In this document: piece after piece, positions 17,873-58,325 of the stretch
Layout of the letters: each line of letters begins with the position of its first letter
Position numbering within the stretch: position 1 is the stretch's first letter
From: Perkinsus chesapeaki ATCC PRA-425
Lineage: Eukaryota; Protista; Perkinsozoa
Assembly: GCA_013115145.1 (NCBI GenBank)
Contig: JAAPAO010000004.1
Span: 160,243 to 224,242, forward strand
Length of the DNA: 64,000 nucleotides
Direction of reading: 5' to 3'
Program-made: the position numbers and the translations under genes
Notes under the pieces: model-generated
Databases searched by the model: none
The model's input: only the letters and a program-made list of their open reading frames with translations
What the model was told of the DNA's origin: nothing

Positions 17873-20800
17873 CTATATCTTACCAATGGCGGCTATGCAA
17901 CGATTTTCAGGGCTTATACTAGAATCAACATATGTTCTATATGATACTTTACCACATCTACAGAAACACAAATGTTCATTATCACTAATACAACATAGTC
18001 TTGCTTATTGTTATTATTACTTCATAGTCCTTATTAACCATGTTACTCTACATAAATCTATTAATACTTTAACTAGTCTACCACAATAAGCCTTTTCTGG
18101 CGATATATTTGCCCTCTTTGCTGCCTTCGATATGGATGGTGAAGGTTCATGTGAAGTTGCCCATCCAGCCATTGCTCTCAGTATTGCAAATGAACTAGGA
18201 TCATATACCTCTGGTATAAGGCTAGTTAATACCTGATAAAACTAACAGTAATAAGAGCTGTTGCTGCTGCTGCTGATCACTGCTATAATGCTTAGTCATT
18301 ACTCACCTCTTTCCCACATAACATATCATATTCACATCTATGATGACAACATGTTGCTATTAATGCAGATGGTCTCACTACTGTTGATGATGATGAAATA
18401 GACAACAAAGTCCCTACAGTAAGTGTATATAATAACTACTTCAACAACAACAACAGACCACTATTACTTAAACTCAGATCGGTAGCGCTACCACACAGAT
18501 GTTTGGCTATACAACATGTATAGTTTGGTGGCCAGCCTGTTTGAGATGTTATCATATCATATCTGGATATAATAATACATCATCATCAACCTTAATTATA
18601 TCATTACCTATCCCATAACTTTTTAAGTCTTTCATCATATCCAATAGAAGTCATTTTACACTTATTATCTTTTACCTTACTACGAACATCATCATGTTCA
18701 TCGTTATTATTATTATTATCGTCTATATGGGTAAAGAACTGTCCAAGATTTAGGTCTGCTATATCCATTCTCAATCGCATAACCAATGACAATGGTGAAG
18801 AGGAGGATTCATTATTATTATTAACGTCTTTTCTATTCTCTTGTTTGTTACGTCGTGCTTCTCTATCAACCAATAGGAATGTCCTATTACATATATATTA
18901 TTATATAATTCATGTTGATGTTCATGCAGCATTACATTACCAAGGTTTAGAATGATGATGACCCTCATCCTTCATGTTGATGTATTCTTCTTGTTGTTGT
19001 CGTTGTTTATGATATTCCATAACCCAACGTGATAATCCCCCTCTACCACATCCATATTCAATATATAATGGTAACTAAGTAATAAACAATGACAATACAG
19101 GGTGTTCCAATTTGTTATGCAAATCAGTAAAACAGAAGTTTCACCGCGAATACTCAGCGTTTCGGTTTGAAACTTTCGCAGATTATACATTAACAATATT
19201 ATGACAGCATACAATGAAATCACGAAATCGATAGACCGTTTCACATGAAATGAGGCGAGCGAATTTTTTGGGTCCAGCGCGCCGTTCCAATTCGTTATGC
19301 GAAAAAGTTGTAATCGTGTTAACATGGCCCGTGGAACCTTCCTCACCGAATCGGAACGATCAACAATCATCAAGTGCTTAGCCAGCGGTGAAACAGCGCT
19401 GCAGATCTCAAAAAAACTGGGCAGAGACCCTCGAACAGTCAAAAGTTTCACCAATGACCCTTCTAGAAAGTACGTGAGGCCAAAGGGCGCTTATAAGACG
19501 AGCGTTACCCCTCGCGAGCCGTCAACAGGACGCCTCTCAGCACCAGCAAGAGATTGTTTGAAGAAGCAGGAATCCCGATGAAATGCAAAACGACTCGGTG
19601 CCGGGTACTAAAGTCCATTGCAAGCGTCAAGAAGCCCCGCGCCACTCCCCTGCTGACCACGAAACACCGTCAGGCTAGGCTGCGATGGGCTTGGGACAAT
19701 ATCAAAAGAGAGTTTGGCCACATAATATGGACTGATGAGGCCAGGGCGACACTGGACGGCCCTGACGGGTGGAGTCGTGGGTGGATTACCCACCATGGAT
19801 CAGTACCAGGGAGAACTAGGCGCCAGCATGGTGGAGGCGGAGTCATGTTCTGGGCTGGAATTGTATCCGGCGAGCTTATAGGCCCATTTAGGGTAGCGAA
19901 AGGCGTTAAGATGGACTCCAAAGAGTAGGACATCAACGCTGCGCGCACCATGTTCCAATATCATAGATACTGCAAGCTTCTAGATCAAACTTTGATTCCC
20001 TGGTATCGCCAGCAGCCTTTAGCCAGACGCAAGAAGCTTGTGCTGATGCAGGATAATGCCCCATCCCATTGCAGCCAGTTTTCAAAAGAATCCTTACGAA
20101 AAAAGGGAATCGGAGAGGCAAAAATCCTGCCGTGGCCATCCAACAGTCCAGACCTTAACGTCATTGAGAACCTCTGGAGCTTTATCAAACAGTGAGAAAC
20201 TAATACGTTGTGCATAGCTATCCCAGGACTGCTTACTAGGGATATCTATGGAGAGGGACGACAATATAGCACCCTAGACGAGCTGTGGAGTGCCATCGAG
20301 AGGTCGGCCAGGGAAGTGCCAAAAAGCTTCATAGAAAAGCTCTGCGATTCCATCGACAGCAGACTCCGAAGGTTAATTGCTAGACATGGTGGACATGTGG
20401 GTGCATGAGAACATGATTTGAACTTGACAAGTTTCTTTTTGGGCCGACTACAGTTTAGTTGCATAACGAATTGGAACGGCGCGCTGGACCAAAAAAAATT
20501 CGCTCGCCTCATTTCATGTGAAACGGTCTATCGATTTCGCGATTTCATTGTATGCTGTCATAATATTGTTAATGTATAATCTGCGAAAGTTTCAAACCGA
20601 AACGCTGAGTATTCGCGGTGAAACTGCTGTTTTACTGATTTGCATAACAAATTGGAACACCCTGTATTATAATAATGGTATTACACTATTATTATTATCA
20701 TGAAGCATTCCCTCTTCTTCCAACACAGATAACAGTCTTGCATTTTGTATATCATGTTTATCATCATGTGTATCACAATTACCATGGCCACTAACATGAC

Positions 20801-44132: not shown

Positions 44133-47744
<3,612 letters not shown>

Positions 47745-47836
47745 ATAATACAATATAACAAACACCAATGATAATAATAATAATAAGTTATTGAGTTATA
47801 TTAGTTAATAGTATGAACGCAATAATAATAATTATA

Positions 47837-48817
47837 TTATTTAATACATATATTACCAAAACATGATAGTTTATTAAATAATATATTACGTTTTTTATAC
47901 CGTTGTTTATTAATGTTAGATATTTTATCATTTATTATTATTGTATCAGTATTATTTATATTATTATATATTGTATTAACAACATTAACATGTATTATAT
48001 CATATAATGTATCACCATAATCTTTGTCTAATGTTATGATAAATATTCTTTCATGAGTTATATTCCTTTTAATACACCATTCATTTATTTTATTATCTAT
48101 ACTACCATCTGCTGCTGATAGTAGTAGTATCTGATGATATTATAAACTATTTATTTTATACTTTATTATTATATCATTACTAATAATATTTCCATTGGTT
48201 TACATTTTTGTATAGATACTTCAATTGCTCTCATATCAATATTATCTAATTGTTTATCAATATCATTATTATTTATTATAGTATATATAATACCACTACT
48301 AATAGCAGTAGTACTAGATGATACATAACAAGGTAACGAATCACTAAAATTAGATATCTAATAATATATATTATTAACATTATTATCATTATTGGGATTA
48401 CCATATTAAACCGTGTTAATGCTACTAATATTTCGTCATTATTATCTAATGTTTTTATTGGAAAATAACATCGTATATCATCATCATCCTCGGCAGTATC
48501 TCTATTATTATCATATAATGTATTAGTTGCTTGTTTAGCTTTATTAGATGTTATTAATGCTTTTATAACATGTTTAATAATATATGATAATGCTGGTTCA
48601 CCAATAATAAAACATATATTAAATCTATAATGTATATCATTCACATCTTCTGGTAAGAATGTTAACTTTTTAGATAATAATAGTCTTTTATTGTTCTTCT
48701 AAATATAATAACATTATTAACATATTATTATAATTATCCTACTTTATTATGTTCTATTACATCAATACCCTTACTATCCCTTAAACCTTCATTAACATCT
48801 CTATTATCAACAAACAT
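47837..48817 (-). CDS. Hypothetical protein, multi-exon
   Basis: ORF 48276-48644 plus flanking open segments separated by GT-AG gaps; no recognised domain; ends approximate. Confidence 0.3.
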
Positions 48818-48883
48818 ATATTGTCATTGAACACACCACACATCACAGAGACAACATCATGTCGATTAGCGCGCGTGATAAGA

Positions 48884-48901
48884 ATCGATCACGTGATCGA
48901 T
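48884..48901. promoter_or_regulatory. 18-bp perfect palindrome ATCGATCACGTGATCGAT upstream of RPL27
   Basis: Seen directly; 77 nt before the RPL27 ATG; repeated at 57179-57196. Confidence 0.75.
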
Positions 48902-48978
48902 ATTTATTTTAGACGGAGTTGATAGAGGGCCTAGACCACGAGTCCAGCGTCTTCAATACCAGTCGACTACTTGATAAG

Positions 48979-49523
48979 ATGGGCAAGTTGTAAGTATCAC
49001 TATATGTAGTATATGGTGTTTTATTATTCATCTTTTTAGTATCCGTGCCGGACGTGTTGTTATCCTACTTAACGGTCGTCAAGCTGGTCATAAAGCAGTT
49101 ATCGTTAAGGTTAATGAAAATGGAACTAAAAGCCATCCTTATGGGCATTGCCTAGTTGTTGGTATTGAGAAACATCCTCAATCTGTTACTAAGAAGATGA
49201 GTATGAAGAAGCAAGATAAACGTTCTAGAGTTAAGACATTCGTTAAGTATGTTAACTTTAATCATCTTATTGCTACTAGGTAATATATATATTATTGTTG
49301 TTAAACATATTATGTTGTTATTATTAGATATACTCTTCCTCATGATATTGATGGTAAAACATTAGTAACTGATGAGCAGATGCAAACTGTTGATGGCAGA
49401 AAGCAGGCTAAATTGAGCTTTGCCAAGTTAATGAAGGAGAAGTTCCAAAAGCCTTCTCTTGAAAAGAGTGGTAACAAACCATCTAAGGATCTTGTATTCC
49501 TTAGAAGGAAGTTACGCTTCTAA
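48979..49523 (+). CDS. RPL27: 60S ribosomal protein L27 (eL27), 3 exons
   Basis: MGKF/IRAGRVVILLNGRQAGHKAVIV...PYGHCLVVGIEKHP...FVKYVNFNHLIATR/Y...FLRRKLRF-stop. Confidence 0.97.
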
Positions 49524-49666
49524 CTTATACCACCAACTACAAGTATATCGACTTATTATTGTTATCATTCTAGGATGATAATAATATACTACGATTGCTG
49601 CTGGGTCTCAAATGTTATTATAAGTGTAGTGTTTAATAGTATTATATTCAATAATAGTAATAAGGG

Positions 49667-51430
49667 ATGTTATTAATAACACATAATAATATCAAATATA
49701 ATAATAAAGCTATTATTAATTGTATAAGGTTATATTCATCTACTAGAAGATCTAATAGTGATATTGGATGCGATATTGATTCATTTCCTGGTTCAAAAGG
49801 GTCTAATATTAAGTAAGTTGATGGTCGTTGTTGTGGTGGTGGTTATGATGTTGTTGTTTTATTATTAGATATTTAGATAATGGTGGTTATCAAAGTTTTC
49901 AAATGAGTGAAGTATTAGATAATGCTGTACCTCGTAATCAGAATTCACCATTAAATCCACCATATGGTTTATATCCTGAATTATTAACAGCTACTGCATT
50001 TACAGCACCTAGACATAGTAATTATTATACATGGTTATATAGAAAATATCCAACAATAACACAATTAATGAGAAATAATAATAATACAATATATGATATA
50101 TATAATGGAAATAATAAGTAATAATGAATTAATATTTACAAGACCAATAATTAATAATAATTGTTGTTGTTAGTTTTATTATTGAAAAGCTTGATAATAA
50201 CAATAGTGGTGTAACACCTGAACCTTATAGATTCATGTCGATGGAAGATAGTGTTAATAATAATAAAGATGATGATAATGATGTGGATTGGGTTGATTCA
50301 TTATTTACTATAGCCTATCATAATGGTGCGGCTTGTGGTATATATGATTTTAATATTAATATGTCTAATAATAATAAGATATTTATACATCACGATGCAG
50401 ATATTATGTTATTGCCTAGAGAAGGTATATTAAACATACGTACAGAGTTAGGGATATTAAGAGGTGGTCCAAGAGAGATGTTATTAATACCGAAAGGTAT
50501 TAAATTTACTGTTGATCATATTATTATAAATAATAATGAAGAAGAATATGGAAAAAGGAGAGCTAAAGGGTAGTATAATAATAACCTACAACTACAACAA
50601 CAGTAGTAGTAGTATATTGTATTATTAGATACTTTTTAGAGAACTTTGGCGCACCATTTAAAATACCAGATCTAGGTCCAATAGGTATATCTGGTGGTTT
50701 AGCCCATCCAAGGCATTTTAGAGCACCAATAGCATCAGCAGTATTAGAAGATAATAATAATACTACTTATCAACTTATATCTAAATTTCAAGGTTTATTG
50801 TAATATATCGTATAATGTTATTGTTATTAATATTATTATTATTTTAGATATAAATCATTATTGAGTAGAGTACCATATGATGTTATTGGTTGGTATGGTA
50901 ATTATTATCCAACAGTATATGATTTAGGTCTATTCATGGCTATTAATTCAGTAACATATGATCATCCTGATCCAAGTATAGGAGTTGTATTACAATCACC
51001 ATCATTAACATATTCACCAGGAACTGCTAATATTGATTTTGTTATATTTCCCCCAAGATGGTTACCTACCGAGAATACCTTTAGACCACCATGGTATCAT
51101 AGAAATGTTATGTCTGAGTTTATGGGATTATTATATGGTGGATATGATGCTAAAAAGGGTTTTAAACCAGGTTATAGTTCTATACATAATAAACTAGCAC
51201 CACATGGACCAGATAGAGCAACAACAATAACAACAACTGCTACTGGTGGATATGATACACCTGCTGCTGCTGATGATGATGATAGGGGTCCTGATAGATA
51301 TAGTGGTACTATGGCATTTATGTGGGAATCAGATAATATATGGATACCTACAAAAAATGCATTAAATTTACTTAAAGATGATACTTATATTAATTGTTGG
51401 ATTGATAATATTAATGAATGGGATAGGTAA
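49667..51430 (+). CDS. HGD: Homogentisate 1,2-dioxygenase with N-terminal extension, multi-exon
   Basis: QNSPLNPPYGLYPELLTATAFTAPR; FKIPDLGPIG; YDHPDPSI; DFVIFPPRW; TFRPPWYHRNVMSEFMGL; PHGPD (metal-ligand motifs). Confidence 0.93.
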
Positions 51431-51754
51431 TAATAATAATAATATATTAATCACAATATTAGATATAGTTATTACTGTACTGCTGTTATTATCTTTATCA
51501 TTAGGTTTAATATTAATAATAAACCAAGTAATCCCAATAGATTACCGTTCAATCCTAATAATACTACTACTAATATGTAGTAGTAGTAGCTCTTTCTCAT
51601 CATTATAATAATCGTTGTATAGATGATAAAGATGATGATGATGATGATGATGATGATGATAATGTTCATAACTATTATCATGTTTTTGATTATTATCTTA
51701 ATAATAACTCTATAATTTAGTATTGAGTTTAGTATTATCATTCTTAGTATTATT

Positions 51755-52769
51755 ATGTCAGCAACACCAACACAGCCTGAAACAGCAGCCTGCAAGGTGG
51801 AGGCACCACCACCAGGAGCAGGAGCAGGAGACGAAGGCAGCGTGCCCTTCTCAACGAGCTGTAGATCAAGCAGCTCATCATCATCAATGAGATATATTAA
51901 TTTTATGGGGCATGATATATCACGTAATAGTGTAGAGAAGGTATTCAAAGGTGCAGTAGGATCATTCGTTATATTAAATACAATAATGGTAATAATAATT
52001 CTTAGTATGATATAGCATTATTGTTATTATTCACTGTCTATCACAGTTATAGCAGTTACTAGCTTAGTTATTAGATACCATTTATAATACCAAAGGTTTC
52101 CAAATCTTATCGTGGTCCTCCTTATTTACCAACAAGAGACAAATCAATTAATATTATATTTCATTATCTTATACCACGTAGCGGTATTATAGTTGATAAA
52201 TCAATATTACTAGACTTAGGAAGTGGTGATGGTAGAATGGTTATTAATGCTATTAATAAAGGTAAATTTAGTAAGGCGTATGGTATAGAGATAAACCCAT
52301 GGTTAATATTAATATCTAAACTTAAATCATTAATAATACTAAATAGGAATAATAATAATAATACTACTCATTTTATATGGGGTAATGCATTCGATAAAAA
52401 ACTTATTAAGAGTATTAATCCAGATGTTATTACATTATATGGCAGACCAGGTAATATAATAATAATAATAATAATAACAACTTTTACTATTATATATTAG
52501 GTGACAATGTTATGATGAAATATGGTAAAGTATTAGAAGATATATTATTAAATAATAATAATGACAGTGGCAATGCTGGTGGTAGTAATGGTGCTGCTGG
52601 GGCTGGGGCTGGGGCTGGTGGTGTTATAGTATTATCTAATGAATTCGATATACCAGGATGGAATCAAAGATTAATAGCTGAATCAGATGGTGTGAAGATG
52701 TATAAATTAATAAGAGAAGGGAATAATGTATTAAATGAAAGAATAAATAAGGATGATAAAGAGGATTAG
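51755..52769 (+). CDS. FAM173/ATPSCKMT-like protein lysine methyltransferase, multi-exon
   Basis: PPYLPT; LLDLGSGDGRMV; AYGIEINPWL; VIVLSNEFDIPGW. Confidence 0.78.
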
Positions 52770-52910
52770 GGATACTACAAGAAGGATAATAATAATGACA
52801 CTACCACTGCCGCTGCTTACGATTACGATTACGTTGATGCTTAGTTTCTCCTACTATTTGTTATATTATTATTGAGTTTATTATTATTAGTTATTATAGG
52901 TTTACTCAAT

Positions 52911-55375
52911 ATGTTAAGAAGATATGTGTTGTTATCATCATCATCATCATCATCGAGGTCAAGAGGTCGTGGTCGTAGGATGATATTAGGATGTTATAAT
53001 AATAGAGTATTATTATCATCATGTGTTGATAATATTAATAAATATTATACCACAGCAACAACAACAACAACAAGTAGTCTACATACACCATTGACTATGT
53101 AATATAATGATAGTAATAACAAATACAATGTATGCAAATTTGTTATGGAAATTGCCGAATTTGGTTATCTCTCGCCGTAGAGCGGTTTGCGATGCCAAAA
53201 TTAGACGGTTTATGTATTCTCACTGAGGGAAATTCGATGAGATATCGATCAACCATTTCATGGGCCATTTTATTGTTATATTTGATGACCCGCGGTCATT
53301 TCAGCACGCGGCTAGGGTGGGATTTTGTTATGCAATGGTCACGAAGTATGCTATACATTTCATGGCTAGCCAGGTGAATATGCACCTGCATATTGGAGTA
53401 TCCCAAATGACATATCCTACCAGACAATGCGATACCATTAATTCATTTATAGGATGCTGGGGCTGGGCCAGGGCAGCAGCAGCAGCAGACTGTCACATTT
53501 TTCACTTGGCAGCTCATTTTCACTCGAACTCTCATATGTCGGGTCCAAAACTTCATAAGGGGAGAGCAACATTCTGTGCCTTTGCTTTAACAAGTAATCT
53601 GAAATTCAATCGAAACTAATGTATCTGTCGTATAACCTGTATCAAGGTGTCTAAGGACCGTATAGCGGCTATATTTATATAACTATCTTGGAGGTGGTAA
53701 TACGGCTTCATGCTAAGAGCAATATATTACGCATATTGCCAAGTATAATAATGAAATGGTTGATCGATATCTCATCGAATTTCCCTCAGTGAGAATACAA
53801 AAACCGTCTAATTTTGGCATCGCAAACCGCTCTACGGCGAGAGATAACTAAATTCGGCAATTTCCATAACAAATTTGCACACGTTGTATTTGTTATTACT
53901 ATCATTAGATTTACTGAAGATGAGGAATTATTAAGATCAACGGTACGTAGTTTTGGTAATGATATTATTGCTCCTAAAGTTAATAAAATGGACGAAGAAT
54001 CACGTATGGATAAAGATATTATTAAATCATTATTTGATAATGGTTTTATGGGTATGGAAATAGAGACTAATAAAGGTGGTAGTGGTTTAAGTTTTATTGA
54101 AACGTTAATAACAATAGAAGAGATATCTAGAATAGATCCATCAGTTGGTGCTATGATAGATATACATAATACCTTGATACCAAGATCAATATTATTATAT
54201 GGTACTAATAAACAAAAAGATATATGGTTACCTAAACTAGCGCAAAATACTATTGGTGCATTTGCTATATCTGAGTCTAATGCAGGTTCAGATGCATTCA
54301 ATTTAAAGACAATAGCTACTAAAGTAGTAGAAGGGGGTAGTAATAGTGGTGGTGGTGGATGGTTATTGAATGGTAATAAAATGTGGATCAGTAATTCTAT
54401 TGAAGCTGGTGTGTTTATTATATTTGCTACTATTGATGTATCACTTGGTTATAAAGGTATAACTGCATTTATATTACCTAAATATGAAGATGATGGTGTA
54501 ACTATGAGAAAAGGTTTAAGTATAGGACCACCAGAGAAAAAGCTTGGTATTAAAGCATCAAGTAGTAATCATAATAATAATAATAAGACATATGTCTTAT
54601 TATTATCAATTATAATACTGCCGCATCATCATCATCATCATCATCTGTTTAAGGTACATGCCCTTTACATCTTGATAATGTATTTATACCAGAGAGTGCA
54701 TTATTAGGTAATATTGGTGAAGGTTATAAAGTTGCCATGTCATTATTAAATGAGGGTAGAATTGGTATAGCAGCACAAATGTTGGGTATAGCTAAATCAG
54801 CAATAGAACATTCTTTAAGGTAGTACTAATAATAATAAGAAGGATTAATAGTAATTATTATTATTATTGTTGTTGTTTTTGTATTATTATAATACTAATT
54901 GATGATGATGATAGGTATATGAATGAAAGGAGACAGTTTGGTAAAAAATTAACAGATTTTCAAGGTATGAGATTCCAATTAGCGGAATTACAAACTGAGA
55001 TATATGCAGCTCATCTTATGGTGTAATAATAATAATATAATTATTATTCCGGATGATGATGATGAAGAAGATGATGTTATTAGATATAATGCTGCCAGAC
55101 TTAAGATAATGGTTGATAAAGGTATCATTAATAGTAAAGATATTATATTAGAGTGTAGTAGTGCTAAATTGAAAGCATCAAGAGTTGCTGAATTAGCTAC
55201 TAGTAAAGGTATTGATTGGTTGGGTGGTGTTGGTTATACTAAAGATTATCCCTTAGAAAAGTTATATAGGGATGCTAAAATAGGACAAATATATGAAGGT
55301 ACATCTAATATACAATTAGAGACAATAGCTAAATATATTATACAACGACAACAACAACAACAACAACATCAATGA
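52911..55375 (+). CDS. Short/branched-chain acyl-CoA dehydrogenase (ACADSB-like), mitochondrial
   Basis: Presequence [10 protein letters not shown]...; [15 protein letters not shown]; [15 protein letters not shown]; [10 protein letters not shown]; [10 protein letters not shown]; [14 protein letters not shown]; RRQFG; [18 protein letters not shown]. Confidence 0.92.
53126..53886. mobile_element. Non-autonomous Tc1-like element/MITE, 761 bp, 136-bp TIRs, TA flanks, in ACADSB intron 1
   Basis: TIRs 53126-53261 and 53751-53886 differ at 4 positions; TA at 53124-53125 and 53887-53888; no transposase ORF recognised. Confidence 0.88.
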
Positions 55376-55554
55376 TAATATTAATAATGAGAAGAAGAAG
55401 ATGAACATGAATATTTTTATTATTTATAATAATGATTATTATTCAAGTATTTTCTATTGTTAATTATATTGTGTATAGTTTTATCCCTATAACAGTAGTC
55501 CCTACTACAGTAGTTGTCGTACTCTTGTTGTAGTTGTTGTTGTTGTTATTGGTA

Positions 55555-56935
55555 ATGTCTGCTACTGGTTATATAATTGGTACATTTCCTTGGGATACAA
55601 CACCACAATTTATACGTTATCATACGGATTATATATCCAAACCTATATTACAACAACACGATAATGATGATGATGATGATAGTAATAATACAATTAATAA
55701 TATTATAATAAATAATGAAGATGAGGAAGAAAAAGAAGAAGGTTCAATTGAATCAATGGTAATTATTATTATTATTATGACGGCGCTTAATGTGAATTAA
55801 AGGTTGTTAGTATTATTATTATTGACATTAGGTAAATGATGTTTGTAGAGCACTAATACAGGAAAAAGAATTCTATTCCGACAAACTAGTAATAATTACT
55901 CTTATTATTAATAATATGTATTATTATTAGAATACTATTAAACTATCTGTATCGGGTAGTATAATACCATCACAATTATCTTCAAAAAGATACGGTATAT
56001 TAAAACATACAGCTATGAGGATGTTATTATTAAGGTATATTAATTATACCAATAATCCTACTATTACTATTGGTAATAATAATAATAATAAGATTGGGTT
56101 TCATTATTATATATTAGGTTTTATACCCTCAACATCTAATAATGATGATACCATTCATAATGGGCAGCAGCAGCATAGTAGTAGTAAATGTTGTTATGTT
56201 GATGAAGGTGGTGCATTACTTACATATAGATTATCTAATATTGAGTTATTATCATTAAGTATTAAAGCTGGTAATAAACTTAGTGGTATAGTTAATAATG
56301 TTAGTGGTAATAATATTAATGTAACTATATTAAACACATGGGCGGCAAGAATACCTAGTAATAATATGTTATCTGATTGGACATATGATGAAGATAATAC
56401 ATTATGGCGTAGGTTAACAACAACTACTACTAATAATAATACTATTATTGAGAAAGGTAAATATGTTATATGATTATTGATTATTTAAATATTATTGATA
56501 GGTACACATGTTACATTCTTTATTGATAATGTAATTACTGGTAGTAATAGTGATAATGAAGATTATGTTGATGATGCTGATAATGGTGTTGATGATTGTT
56601 ATGGTGTTGGTGGTGTTGATGAAAATGATGTTGATGCTATATTTACTAAGAAATGGGTAGCAGCTAATAATAACAATCAAGAACCTCCTACTACTAATAG
56701 TAGTAGTAAACCATATAATTGTCTTATAACCAATAAAAAAGACGAATCGACAAGTATTGTATCAGCAGATAACACATTTATTATTATTGGTGCATTAGTG
56801 GAACCTACTAATACTACTAAAGATGATAATGAAAAGATGAAGAATAACAAGAAGAGACATCATAAACAAGATGATGATGAACAACAAGAAAAGCAACAGA
56901 AGCATCATCATTCTAAGAAACATAGAAAAGACTAA
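55555..56935 (+). CDS. RNA polymerase I subunit RPA43-like, multi-exon
   Basis: KRYGIL; GNKLSGIVNNVSGNNINVTILNTWAARIP (S1/OB-like); IIGALV followed by a Lys/His-rich tail. Family call from memory. Confidence 0.55.
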
Positions 56936-57025
56936 TAATAACAAAAACAGTATTCGATAACGTTACTCATCCATTCATAGAAGACATAGTGTTTGTTAAT
57001 AACAACAACAACAACAACTTTAACC

Positions 57026-57120
57026 TTATTAAAAGGTTAACGTTATTAAAAGGTTAACGTTATTAAAAGGTTAACGTTATTAAAAGGTTAACGTTATTAA
57101 AAGGTTAACGTTATCAAAGG
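57026..57120. repeat. 17-bp minisatellite TTATTAAAAGGTTAACG, 5 copies plus a partial copy
   Basis: Units start at 57026, 57043, 57060, 57077, 57094; partial at 57111. Confidence 0.95.
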
Positions 57121-57178
57121 GTTGTGTTCAATTTGGTCATCTCCGAAGATTGGGGGCAGCGCGGCGATTTTAGCGGAT

Positions 57179-57196
57179 ATCGATCACGTGATCGAT
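57179..57196. promoter_or_regulatory. 18-bp perfect palindrome ATCGATCACGTGATCGAT upstream of RPS19
   Basis: Seen directly; 76 nt before the RPS19 ATG. Confidence 0.75.
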
Positions 57197-57272
57197 TATA
57201 TATTGTGAGATGTACCGGATGGATTCTGGTCCCCTTTAGACATTGTTGTATTGTTGCTCTCCTACATTAAAT

Positions 57273-57932
57273 ATGTGTGAGCTAGTCGCCAAATATGATG
57301 TTAAAACTGTAAAGGATGTACCTGCTGAGTTATTCATTAAAGCGTTTGCTGCTCATTTGAAGGCTCAAGGTCAAATGGAAATACCAAAGGTATTATAGTA
57401 TTAATACAGGTTGTTATTATTATATATTATTAGTGGGCTGAATATATTAAGACTGGTACTCAACGTGAGCTTGCTCCTTATGATGATGATTATCTTTATA
57501 TTCGTGCTGCTGCCATTGCCCGTCGCATGTAATAATAATTATTATAGATATCACTAATAATATCATCTTCAGTTACATCCGCCCTAATATCGGTGTTGGT
57601 GCTCTTCGTAAGATATTTGGTATGAAATCTAACTCTGGTGTTTGCCGTACCCATTTCACTCTTGGAGCTGGTAAGATTAACAGGTAATAATATTATCTAT
57701 TATAACTAGTGTCTTATTATTTAATTTATATATTGTTAGATTCTTACTTCAACAATTAGAGAAAATGGATATTGTTGCACAGAGTGATGCTATGAAGGGT
57801 GGCCGTATTATTACTACTACTGGACGCCAAACTCTTGATACTGTTGCCGTACAAGCAGCTAAAGCCGCTAAACCCGAGGAAACTCAAGAAGAGGACGCTG
57901 TTGCTGCTCTGGCTACTACTGCTGAAGAGTAG
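57273..57932 (+). CDS. RPS19: 40S ribosomal protein S19 (eS19), 4 exons
   Basis: TVKDVPAELFIKAFAAHLK...PK/WAEYIKTG..RELAPYDDDYLYIRAAAIARR; GVGALRKIFG; LQQLE; GGRIIT..G..TLD. Confidence 0.97.
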
Positions 57933-58050
57933 ATTATTACTAATAGGAGGGAGTAGCTCTACATCATCATAGATGGTTAACCGAGGATAAGGCAGAAGAG
58001 CAACACCTTACAACAACAATTATTATCTATGTTGTGTTATTTAATGTATG

Positions 58051-58325
58051 AATAAAGTGTATAATTATATAAATAAAAGTGTATAATTATATAAATAAAA
58101 GGGTATTATTATATAAATAAAAGGGTATTATTATATAAATAAAAGGGTATTATTATNNNNNNNNNNNNNNNNNNNNNNNNNNNNNNNNNNNNNNNNNNNN
58201 NNNNNNNNNNNNNNNNNNNNNNNNNNNNNNNNNNNNNNNNNNNNNNNNNNNNNTTATATAAATAAAAGGGTATAATTATATAAATAAAAGGGTATTATTA
58301 TATAAATAAAAGGGTATTATTATAT
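58051..58325. repeat. About 22-bp AT-rich tandem repeat (ATAAATAAAAGGGTATTATTAT) spanning an assembly gap
   Basis: Repeat units on both sides of the N-run. Confidence 0.85.
58157..58253. other. Assembly gap (97 N)
   Basis: Run of n in the sequence. Confidence 1.

Follow-up and report, generated by a model that had tools for sequence, protein, structure and literature searches.

Inspection of a 64,000-nucleotide (nt) stretch of Perkinsus chesapeaki ATCC PRA-425 (contig JAAPAO010000004.1, positions 160,243 to 224,242; hereafter the window) reveals one 18-bp perfect palindrome, ATCGATCACGTGATCGAT, placed at nearly the same short distance upstream of two unrelated ribosomal-protein genes, RPL27 and RPS19. 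The palindrome recurs at the same genes in P. olseni and P. marinus. We consider it reasonably likely that selection maintains the palindrome as a cis-regulatory DNA site for Perkinsus ribosomal-protein genes, one that would probably be read by a protein with two-fold symmetry. The features on which the analysis centers are as follows, in window coordinates.

48884-48901, no strand assigned: palindrome 1, ATCGATCACGTGATCGAT, with a gap of 77 nt to the RPL27 ATG at 48979
57179-57196, no strand assigned: palindrome 2, the same ATCGATCACGTGATCGAT, with a gap of 76 nt to the RPS19 ATG at 57273
48979-49523, plus strand: RPL27 (eL27), exons 48979-48989, 49040-49279 and 49328-49523, 148 amino acids
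57273-57932, plus strand: RPS19 (eS19), exons 57273-57389, 57434-57528, 57573-57683 and 57740-57932, 171 amino acids

Occurrence of the palindrome and its conservation in three species

A scan of both strands of the window returned two exact matches to ATCGATCACGTGATCGAT and no third match on either strand when up to 3 mismatches were allowed. The chance expectation is none, with 0 matches across 100 dinucleotide-preserving shuffles of the window. Positions 48883-48903 are the reverse complement of 57177-57197, an identity of 21 bp in opposite orientation that only reflects one or two additional A/T-rich bases per side. A first-pass annotation of the window had reported the two copies, their gaps to the ATGs, the 21-bp identity and the lack of further copies in the 64 kb. 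Each of these statements proved exact, and the palindrome observation itself is confirmed as real. The bare hexamer CACGTG at the center of the palindrome is not over-represented in the window, with 4 occurrences observed versus 3.1 expected. A third TCACGTGA, at 45865, lies within a coding exon of a SERCA-type P-type ATPase (peptide EFSRDRK) and is unrelated.

The identity of the downstream genes, which the same annotation had named as RPL27 and RPS19, is borne out by Pfam and by their spliced translations. RPL27 matches Ribosomal_L27e and KOW, and RPS19 matches Ribosomal_S19e. The spliced models carry GT..AG introns, and their lengths of 148 and 171 amino acids are those of annotated Perkinsus proteins. 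Both RPL27 introns are supported by joints in RNA contigs, and the RPL27 protein of the window is 96-100% identical to Perkinsus L27. The span and length of RPS19 agree with the annotated P. chesapeaki gene.

To place the palindrome in a comparative frame, loci with 10-kb flanks around L27 were compared from P. olseni (L104, and L001, a short contig from a second isolate) and from P. marinus (L105, L106 and L107), and the RPS19 orthologues were reached via synteny. A further locus, L108, comes from P. chesapeaki contig JAAPAO010000004.1, contains a 200-nt probe taken from the window and duplicates the latter; it is excluded from the total of ~148 kb. The gene order L27, homogentisate dioxygenase (HGD), acyl-CoA dehydrogenase (ACAD), RPA43 and S19 is kept in both P. 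olseni and P. marinus, and a single locus thus usually contains both ribosomal-protein genes. The palindrome precedes RPL27 in all six loci (the P. chesapeaki window, P. olseni L104 and L001, and three P. marinus loci) and precedes RPS19 in all four loci that reach that gene (P. chesapeaki, P. olseni and two of P. marinus). Across these 10 sites, from three species and two unrelated genes, the distance to the ATG stays within 72-77 nt.

When the 250 nt before each gene are aligned, the palindrome emerges as the top-conserved 18-nt window in both cases. For RPL27 (six sequences), 15 of the 18 palindrome columns are invariant versus 16% of columns elsewhere; for RPS19 (four sequences), the values are 17 of 18 versus 23%. 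Outside the motif, pairwise identity between the upstream DNA of P. chesapeaki and that of the other species is 0.43-0.53, and locus G+C content spans 0.29 (P. chesapeaki) to 0.51 (P. olseni). That the palindrome alone survived amid diverged upstream DNA and this shift in base composition is strong evidence that it has been held by purifying selection and, judged on such comparative grounds, the element is functional. The first-pass annotation had proposed a ribosomal-protein regulon element with a strict position. The proposal is supported in part, in that the positional constraint and the selection hold before RPL27 and RPS19 in three species.

Searches farther afield gave no additional sites. 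The word was not found in L27 loci of more distant organisms (L109-L112), which are mostly cDNA-like or unrelated loci. A profile search with a scaffolded L27 alignment gave fungal and other L27 proteins as its best 120, none of them from Perkinsus, and a search of representatives with RPS19 exon 4 returned three weak matches, all non-Perkinsus.

These data also bear on whether the palindrome could be a neutral relic, that is to say the remains of old transposon ends, an excision footprint or a chance match. The words ATCGAT and AGCGCG, the first of which belongs to the palindrome, are also present in a DD37E transposon, within its inverted ends near 19.2 and 20.5 kb, but those ends share no longer similarity with the palindrome. 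A neutral origin is extremely improbable given a chance expectation of 0, the retention of the 18-mer alone while its flanks were randomized in three species that differ by 20 points in G+C, and the near-identical ATG distance in two unrelated genes. A link to the DD37E ends was rejected on the ground that only the short words are shared. The ends themselves (window 19140-19310 and 20450-20620) are near-identical, roughly 170 nt long, and each contains ATCGATAG and CCAGCGCGCC.

Variation within the site and association with ribosomal-protein genes

Inspection of the 10 sites reveals that every substitution falls at positions 9-11, with positions 1-8 and 12-18 invariant, giving the following pattern.

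Site pattern: ATCGATCANNTGATCGAT, with changes tolerated at positions 9-11

The core reads CACGTG in six of the 10 sites, which are perfect palindromes, CACGCG in two (both sites of P. olseni isolate L104), CAGCTG in one P. marinus RPL27 copy and CAGGTG in another. In contrast, the arms ATCGATCA and GATCGAT are identical at every site, such that the ATCGAT core, present twice per site, is also invariant. The substitutions represent at least 5 independent events when an orphan near-copy described below is included. By our own estimate, which assumes equal mutability, the chance that all of at least 5 events would fall on 3 of 18 positions is ~1e-4. Because every change falls at positions 9-11, the constrained unit is, as read from these comparisons, an inverted repeat of (A/T)ATCGATCA and not an E-box. 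The changes in the center also tend to respect symmetry. CACGTG and CAGCTG differ by one pair of changes that preserves the dyad, and the step from CAGGTG to CAGCTG restores it, in a single case.

Two observations concern P. olseni. The sites L104:9910-9927 and L104:18557-18574 (GCA_013115895.1), 8.6 kb apart, carry the same T-to-C change that yields CACGCG, whereas the second isolate, L001, has CACGTG at RPL27. The parallel change in L104 could represent co-evolution with a binding factor, or gene conversion.

The first-pass annotation had interpreted the CACGTG core as an E-box/G-box for bHLH or bZIP proteins. On this interpretation, a dimer of the Cbf1/USF/TFE type would read the TCACGTGA center and the ATCGAT flanks would tune affinity. 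The sequence ATCACGTGAT is indeed a perfect T-flanked E-box, and 8 of the 10 sites fit CANNTG. However, the core holds all of the variation, the two CACGCG sites no longer conform to CANNTG, and the flanks are unchanged over 15 positions in 10 sites. CACGTG, CAGCTG and CAGGTG also represent different bHLH specificity classes. A full-text search found no report of Perkinsus bHLH factors, although this is a weak argument. There is precedent for an E-box factor at such genes, in that Cbf1 (tCACGTGa) binds ribosomal-protein promoters in Candida albicans (PMC2834713). Since no part of the element is less constrained than the core, the E-box interpretation is weakened and the first-pass assignment was not upheld; we regard it as unlikely.

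We also addressed whether the site is confined to ribosomal-protein genes. All 9 ribosomal-protein gene copies in the ~148 kb carry it, and the second P. olseni isolate brings the number of sites to 10. In contrast, the 26 non-ribosomal gene calls in L104-L107 (~84 kb from P. olseni and P. marinus) all lack the site, with 3-4 mismatches allowed, and none of the about 25-30 other genes of the window carries the palindrome. Genes that lack the site include RPA43, which encodes a polymerase I subunit, and an LSM gene. No further ribosomal-protein-like exon emerged when open frames of the window were screened for lysine/arginine-richness. Were two sites placed at random among ~30 genes, the chance of both falling at the sole two ribosomal-protein genes would be about 1 in 435. 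Across the ~148 kb, no other gene has the site.

The sole exception to this association is an orphan near-copy in P. marinus, ATCGATCACGGGATCGAT with core CACGGG, at L106:739-756 (GG681723.1). This intergenic site follows a series of roughly 45-nt repeats, precedes a tRNA B-box-like sequence, GGTTCGAATCC, by ~30 nt, and is 678 nt from the start of a 278-amino-acid gene of the opposite strand. A tRNA scan found no tRNA at L106:739-756, and no Rfam family or clear open frame was found there. The orphan and the invariance of the ATCGAT core are what might be expected of a general housekeeping promoter or boundary element, comparable to the ATCGAT-centered DRE/BEAF sites of Drosophila, for which the ribosomal-protein link would be a product of sampling. 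Such an element is very unlikely in light of the gene counts and the 1 in 435 chance given above, which set an absence from every other gene of the window and of the related loci against presence at 9 of 9 ribosomal-protein copies.

A metagenome scan for the 18-mer returned 102 loci. The word sits in long, mostly G+C-rich open frames encoding IDHVID in 88 of them, and the other 14 have no ribosomal-protein context. No perkinsid contig is present among the 102, and the scan therefore says nothing about a regulon.

Neighboring blocks and the 5' ends of the transcripts

The upstream alignments contain additional conserved blocks on either side of the palindrome.

48867-48875, plus strand: TAGCGCGCG box, 8 nt upstream of palindrome 1, on its gene-distal side
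57157-57166, plus strand: CAGCGCGGCG box, 12 nt upstream of palindrome 2, in the same orientation relative to the gene
48939-48948, plus strand: CGAGTCCAG/C block, 37-46 nt past palindrome 1 and 31 nt before the ATG, invariant in 6 of 6 sequences
57231-57249, plus strand: CCCYYYAG/ACRTTGTTGT block, 34-52 nt past palindrome 2 and ~33 nt before the ATG, kept in 4 of 4 sequences

The two upstream boxes share a GCGCG core that lies 8-15 nt upstream of the palindrome at all sites in constant orientation. For RPL27, TAGCGCG and a final G are invariant in 6 of 6 upstream regions, the base between them being C or T (TAGCGCGYG). For RPS19, the GCGCG core is invariant in 4 of 4 upstream regions, where the box reads GGCGCGC or AGCGCGG. 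The word AGCGCG occurs 4 times in the window, twice in these boxes and twice in the inverted ends of the DD37E transposon. The downstream blocks are gene-specific, and each ends in an AG that follows the palindrome by ~43-45 nt and precedes the ATG by 31-33 nt. The CGAGTCCAG/C block may be a 5' leader element or a candidate splice-leader acceptor, and the CCCYYYAG/ACRTTGTTGT block a candidate splice-leader acceptor and leader.

Four RNA runs, all stored as contigs and three of them 454 metatranscriptomes, were compared with window 47800-50200. The 454 contigs start with a dinoflagellate-type splice-leader sequence whose junction lies within RPL27 exon 2 at about 49097-49099, just past a genomic AG. 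These joints reflect either mispriming of the leader primer or an internal trans-splice acceptor and therefore do not map the true RPL27 5' end. The fourth contig, from a close relative or a divergent haplotype, includes exon 1, the spliced first intron and leader, with 1 mismatch in 78 nt of exon 2 and a leader that differs. Its alignment starts at 48929, with 51 further letters ahead of that point. Thirty of these agree with the GGAGGC block conserved in the other species, which leaves 21, as many as the splice-leader primer has on the other contigs. Read in this way, from one contig and with the letters partly inferred, RPL27 RNA extends to ~80 nt before the ATG, which is the 3' edge of the palindrome, and excludes the palindrome itself. 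Because the relative's RNA reaches only about -80, the palindrome appears to lie beyond the mature mRNA or right at its 5' end.

From the comparative data we infer that a homodimeric, sequence-specific DNA-binding protein would read the inverted arms, (A/T)ATCGATCA and its complement, across a tolerant center of 2-3 bp, at a site fixed at the 5' end of the mature mRNA or slightly upstream of it. The palindrome and the directional GCGCG box would act together to set or drive RPL27 and RPS19 transcription, and plausibly that of other translation genes.

Several observations weigh against this proposal of a DNA site read by a dimer. Ribosomal-protein genes of two families only were seen, and the orthologues within each are not independent of one another. 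The P. marinus orphan is not beside any recognized ribosomal-protein gene. With the two palindromes discounted, the window shows no enrichment of the half-site by itself, and no candidate binding protein was identified. Two further points concern RNA. All versions of the site are predicted to form a stem of 7-9 bp with a 4-nt loop, where the loop holds all of the variable positions. In addition, if the primary transcript starts upstream, the palindrome would lie in the outron and could act as RNA.

The last two points define an alternative in which the outron or 5' leader would carry the palindrome as RNA, folded into a protein-recognized hairpin that controls splice-leader trans-splicing, pausing or translation. 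Consistent with such a hairpin, the 5' end of the relative's RNA falls at the 3' edge of the palindrome, pyrimidine runs followed by AG lie downstream of both window copies, and the mRNAs are present in splice-leader-primed libraries. In contrast, the stem shows no compensatory or G-U change in 10 sites, and invariant arms of this kind better fit reading by a base-specific protein than a mere stem. The loop tends to stay dyad-symmetric, which is needless for RNA; the restoration of symmetry noted above is relevant to a symmetric DNA-binding dimer and not to an RNA stem-loop. Fold stability does not exceed that of shuffles for 2 of 4 sequences, no Rfam match was found across 47.7-58.15 kb, and the conserved RPS19 AG lies 43 nt downstream of the palindrome rather than adjoining it. 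Taken together, a role for the palindrome as an RNA hairpin seems unlikely.

The surroundings of the two genes contain several additional features. The public P. chesapeaki model KAF4678043.1 (434 amino acids) looks like a fusion of the C-terminal part of a P-type ATPase with RPL27, and it spans the palindrome-bearing intergenic region (L108:10001-13641, corresponding to window about 45.9-49.5 kb). A public P. olseni model of 1087 amino acids (L104:12988-17659) likewise looks fused, joining acyl-CoA dehydrogenase to RPA43. Between the ATPase and RPL27, window 48451-48647 is covered by an RNA contig, and the P. chesapeaki record calls no separate gene there. An open frame on the minus strand at 48279-48698 has no Pfam match and, if real, would be a gene divergent from RPL27. 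Directly upstream of RPS19, window 55931-56470 contains the RPA43 OB domain gene (RNA polymerase I subunit), a ribosome-biogenesis gene without the palindrome. Immediately before the RPS19 control region, 57020-57123 holds 6 copies of a 17-nt tandem repeat, TTAACGTTATTAAAAGG, that P. olseni and P. marinus lack. On the 3' flank of RPS19, a 22-nt tandem repeat of 5 copies (58047-58156) runs into an assembly gap, an N run from 58157.

Relation to known ribosomal-protein elements

The closest known design is found in C. albicans, where the Myb-type protein Tbf1 strictly requires an 18-bp palindrome, TTAGGG-N6-CCCTAA, at ribosomal-protein promoters, and where Cbf1 binds tCACGTGa (PMC2834713). Both systems place an 18-bp hexamer-N6-hexamer upstream of ribosomal-protein genes, both include the TCACGTGA word in association with those genes, and both have the character of a dedicated element with lineage-specific turnover. 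The Perkinsus element agrees in this 6-N6-6 geometry but does not match the Tbf1-type sequence. Its arms are ATCGAT rather than TTAGGG, and its CACGTG is nested as the N6 whereas that of Candida is a separate site. Perkinsus, moreover, is an alveolate, and the comparison involves two of its genes only. The likeness to the Tbf1 palindrome is an analogy of design and not membership.

The apicomplexans, as members of the Myzozoa, form a related lineage, and their ribosomal-protein motifs differ clade by clade: a G-box (AP2) in Plasmodium falciparum, an E2F site in Cryptosporidium parvum and TGCAT in Toxoplasma gondii, differences interpreted as hand-offs between transcription factors (PMC4117751). 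The Perkinsus element resembles these in being a clade-specific, dedicated motif. It differs in that its word is unrelated in sequence and in that Perkinsus adds splice-leader trans-splicing. The Perkinsus word would be a further hand-off of this kind.

With the canonical E-box/G-box, the element shares a CACGTG center, T flanks and dyad symmetry. However, its center is the least conserved part and its flanks the most, the reverse of known E-box sites. In Drosophila, the BED-finger protein DREF, together with TRF2, occupies the DRE, TATCGATA, at promoters of ribosomal-protein and housekeeping genes; the human counterpart is ZBED1. DRE and the Perkinsus element each present a palindromic ATCGAT core near the 5' end of ribosomal-protein or growth genes, and the RPS19 arm reads TATCGAT. 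In contrast to the single DRE 8-mer, Perkinsus has two ATCGAT in a strict 18-bp dyad, with the spacing and the extra CA/TG positions also invariant. The full 8-mer TATCGATA is absent from the Perkinsus sites, the arms of which read AATCGATC or TATCGATC. By sequence, the Perkinsus element appears to belong to none of the Tbf1, DRE, apicomplexan or E-box families. It appears to be a lineage-specific ribosomal-protein gene element with arms of its own. In the literature library searched, the 18-mer was not found in any paper, and no paper was found on Perkinsus cis-regulatory elements.

A broader possibility, which we hold tentatively, is a genus-wide and possibly Perkinsozoa-wide regulon of ribosomal-protein and translation genes, in which a dimeric protein would read ATCGATCA-N2-TGATCGAT where the primary transcript is trans-spliced or initiated. 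Perkinsid and dinoflagellate mRNAs are trans-spliced, and their regulation is thought to be mostly post-transcriptional. To our knowledge, hardly any promoter elements or dedicated transcription factors have been described in either group. An 18-bp word kept before two ribosomal-protein genes despite a 20-point drift in base composition provides a concrete entry point. P. marinus is transfectable, and the element could be mutated in P. marinus reporters and used as bait for its binding protein. The element would add one more case of motif turnover in ribosomal-protein regulons across eukaryotes. If the broader regulon holds true, the palindrome would be the first defined polymerase II promoter element in the dinoflagellate-perkinsid lineage, and would offer a handle on the first dedicated transcription factor of that lineage.

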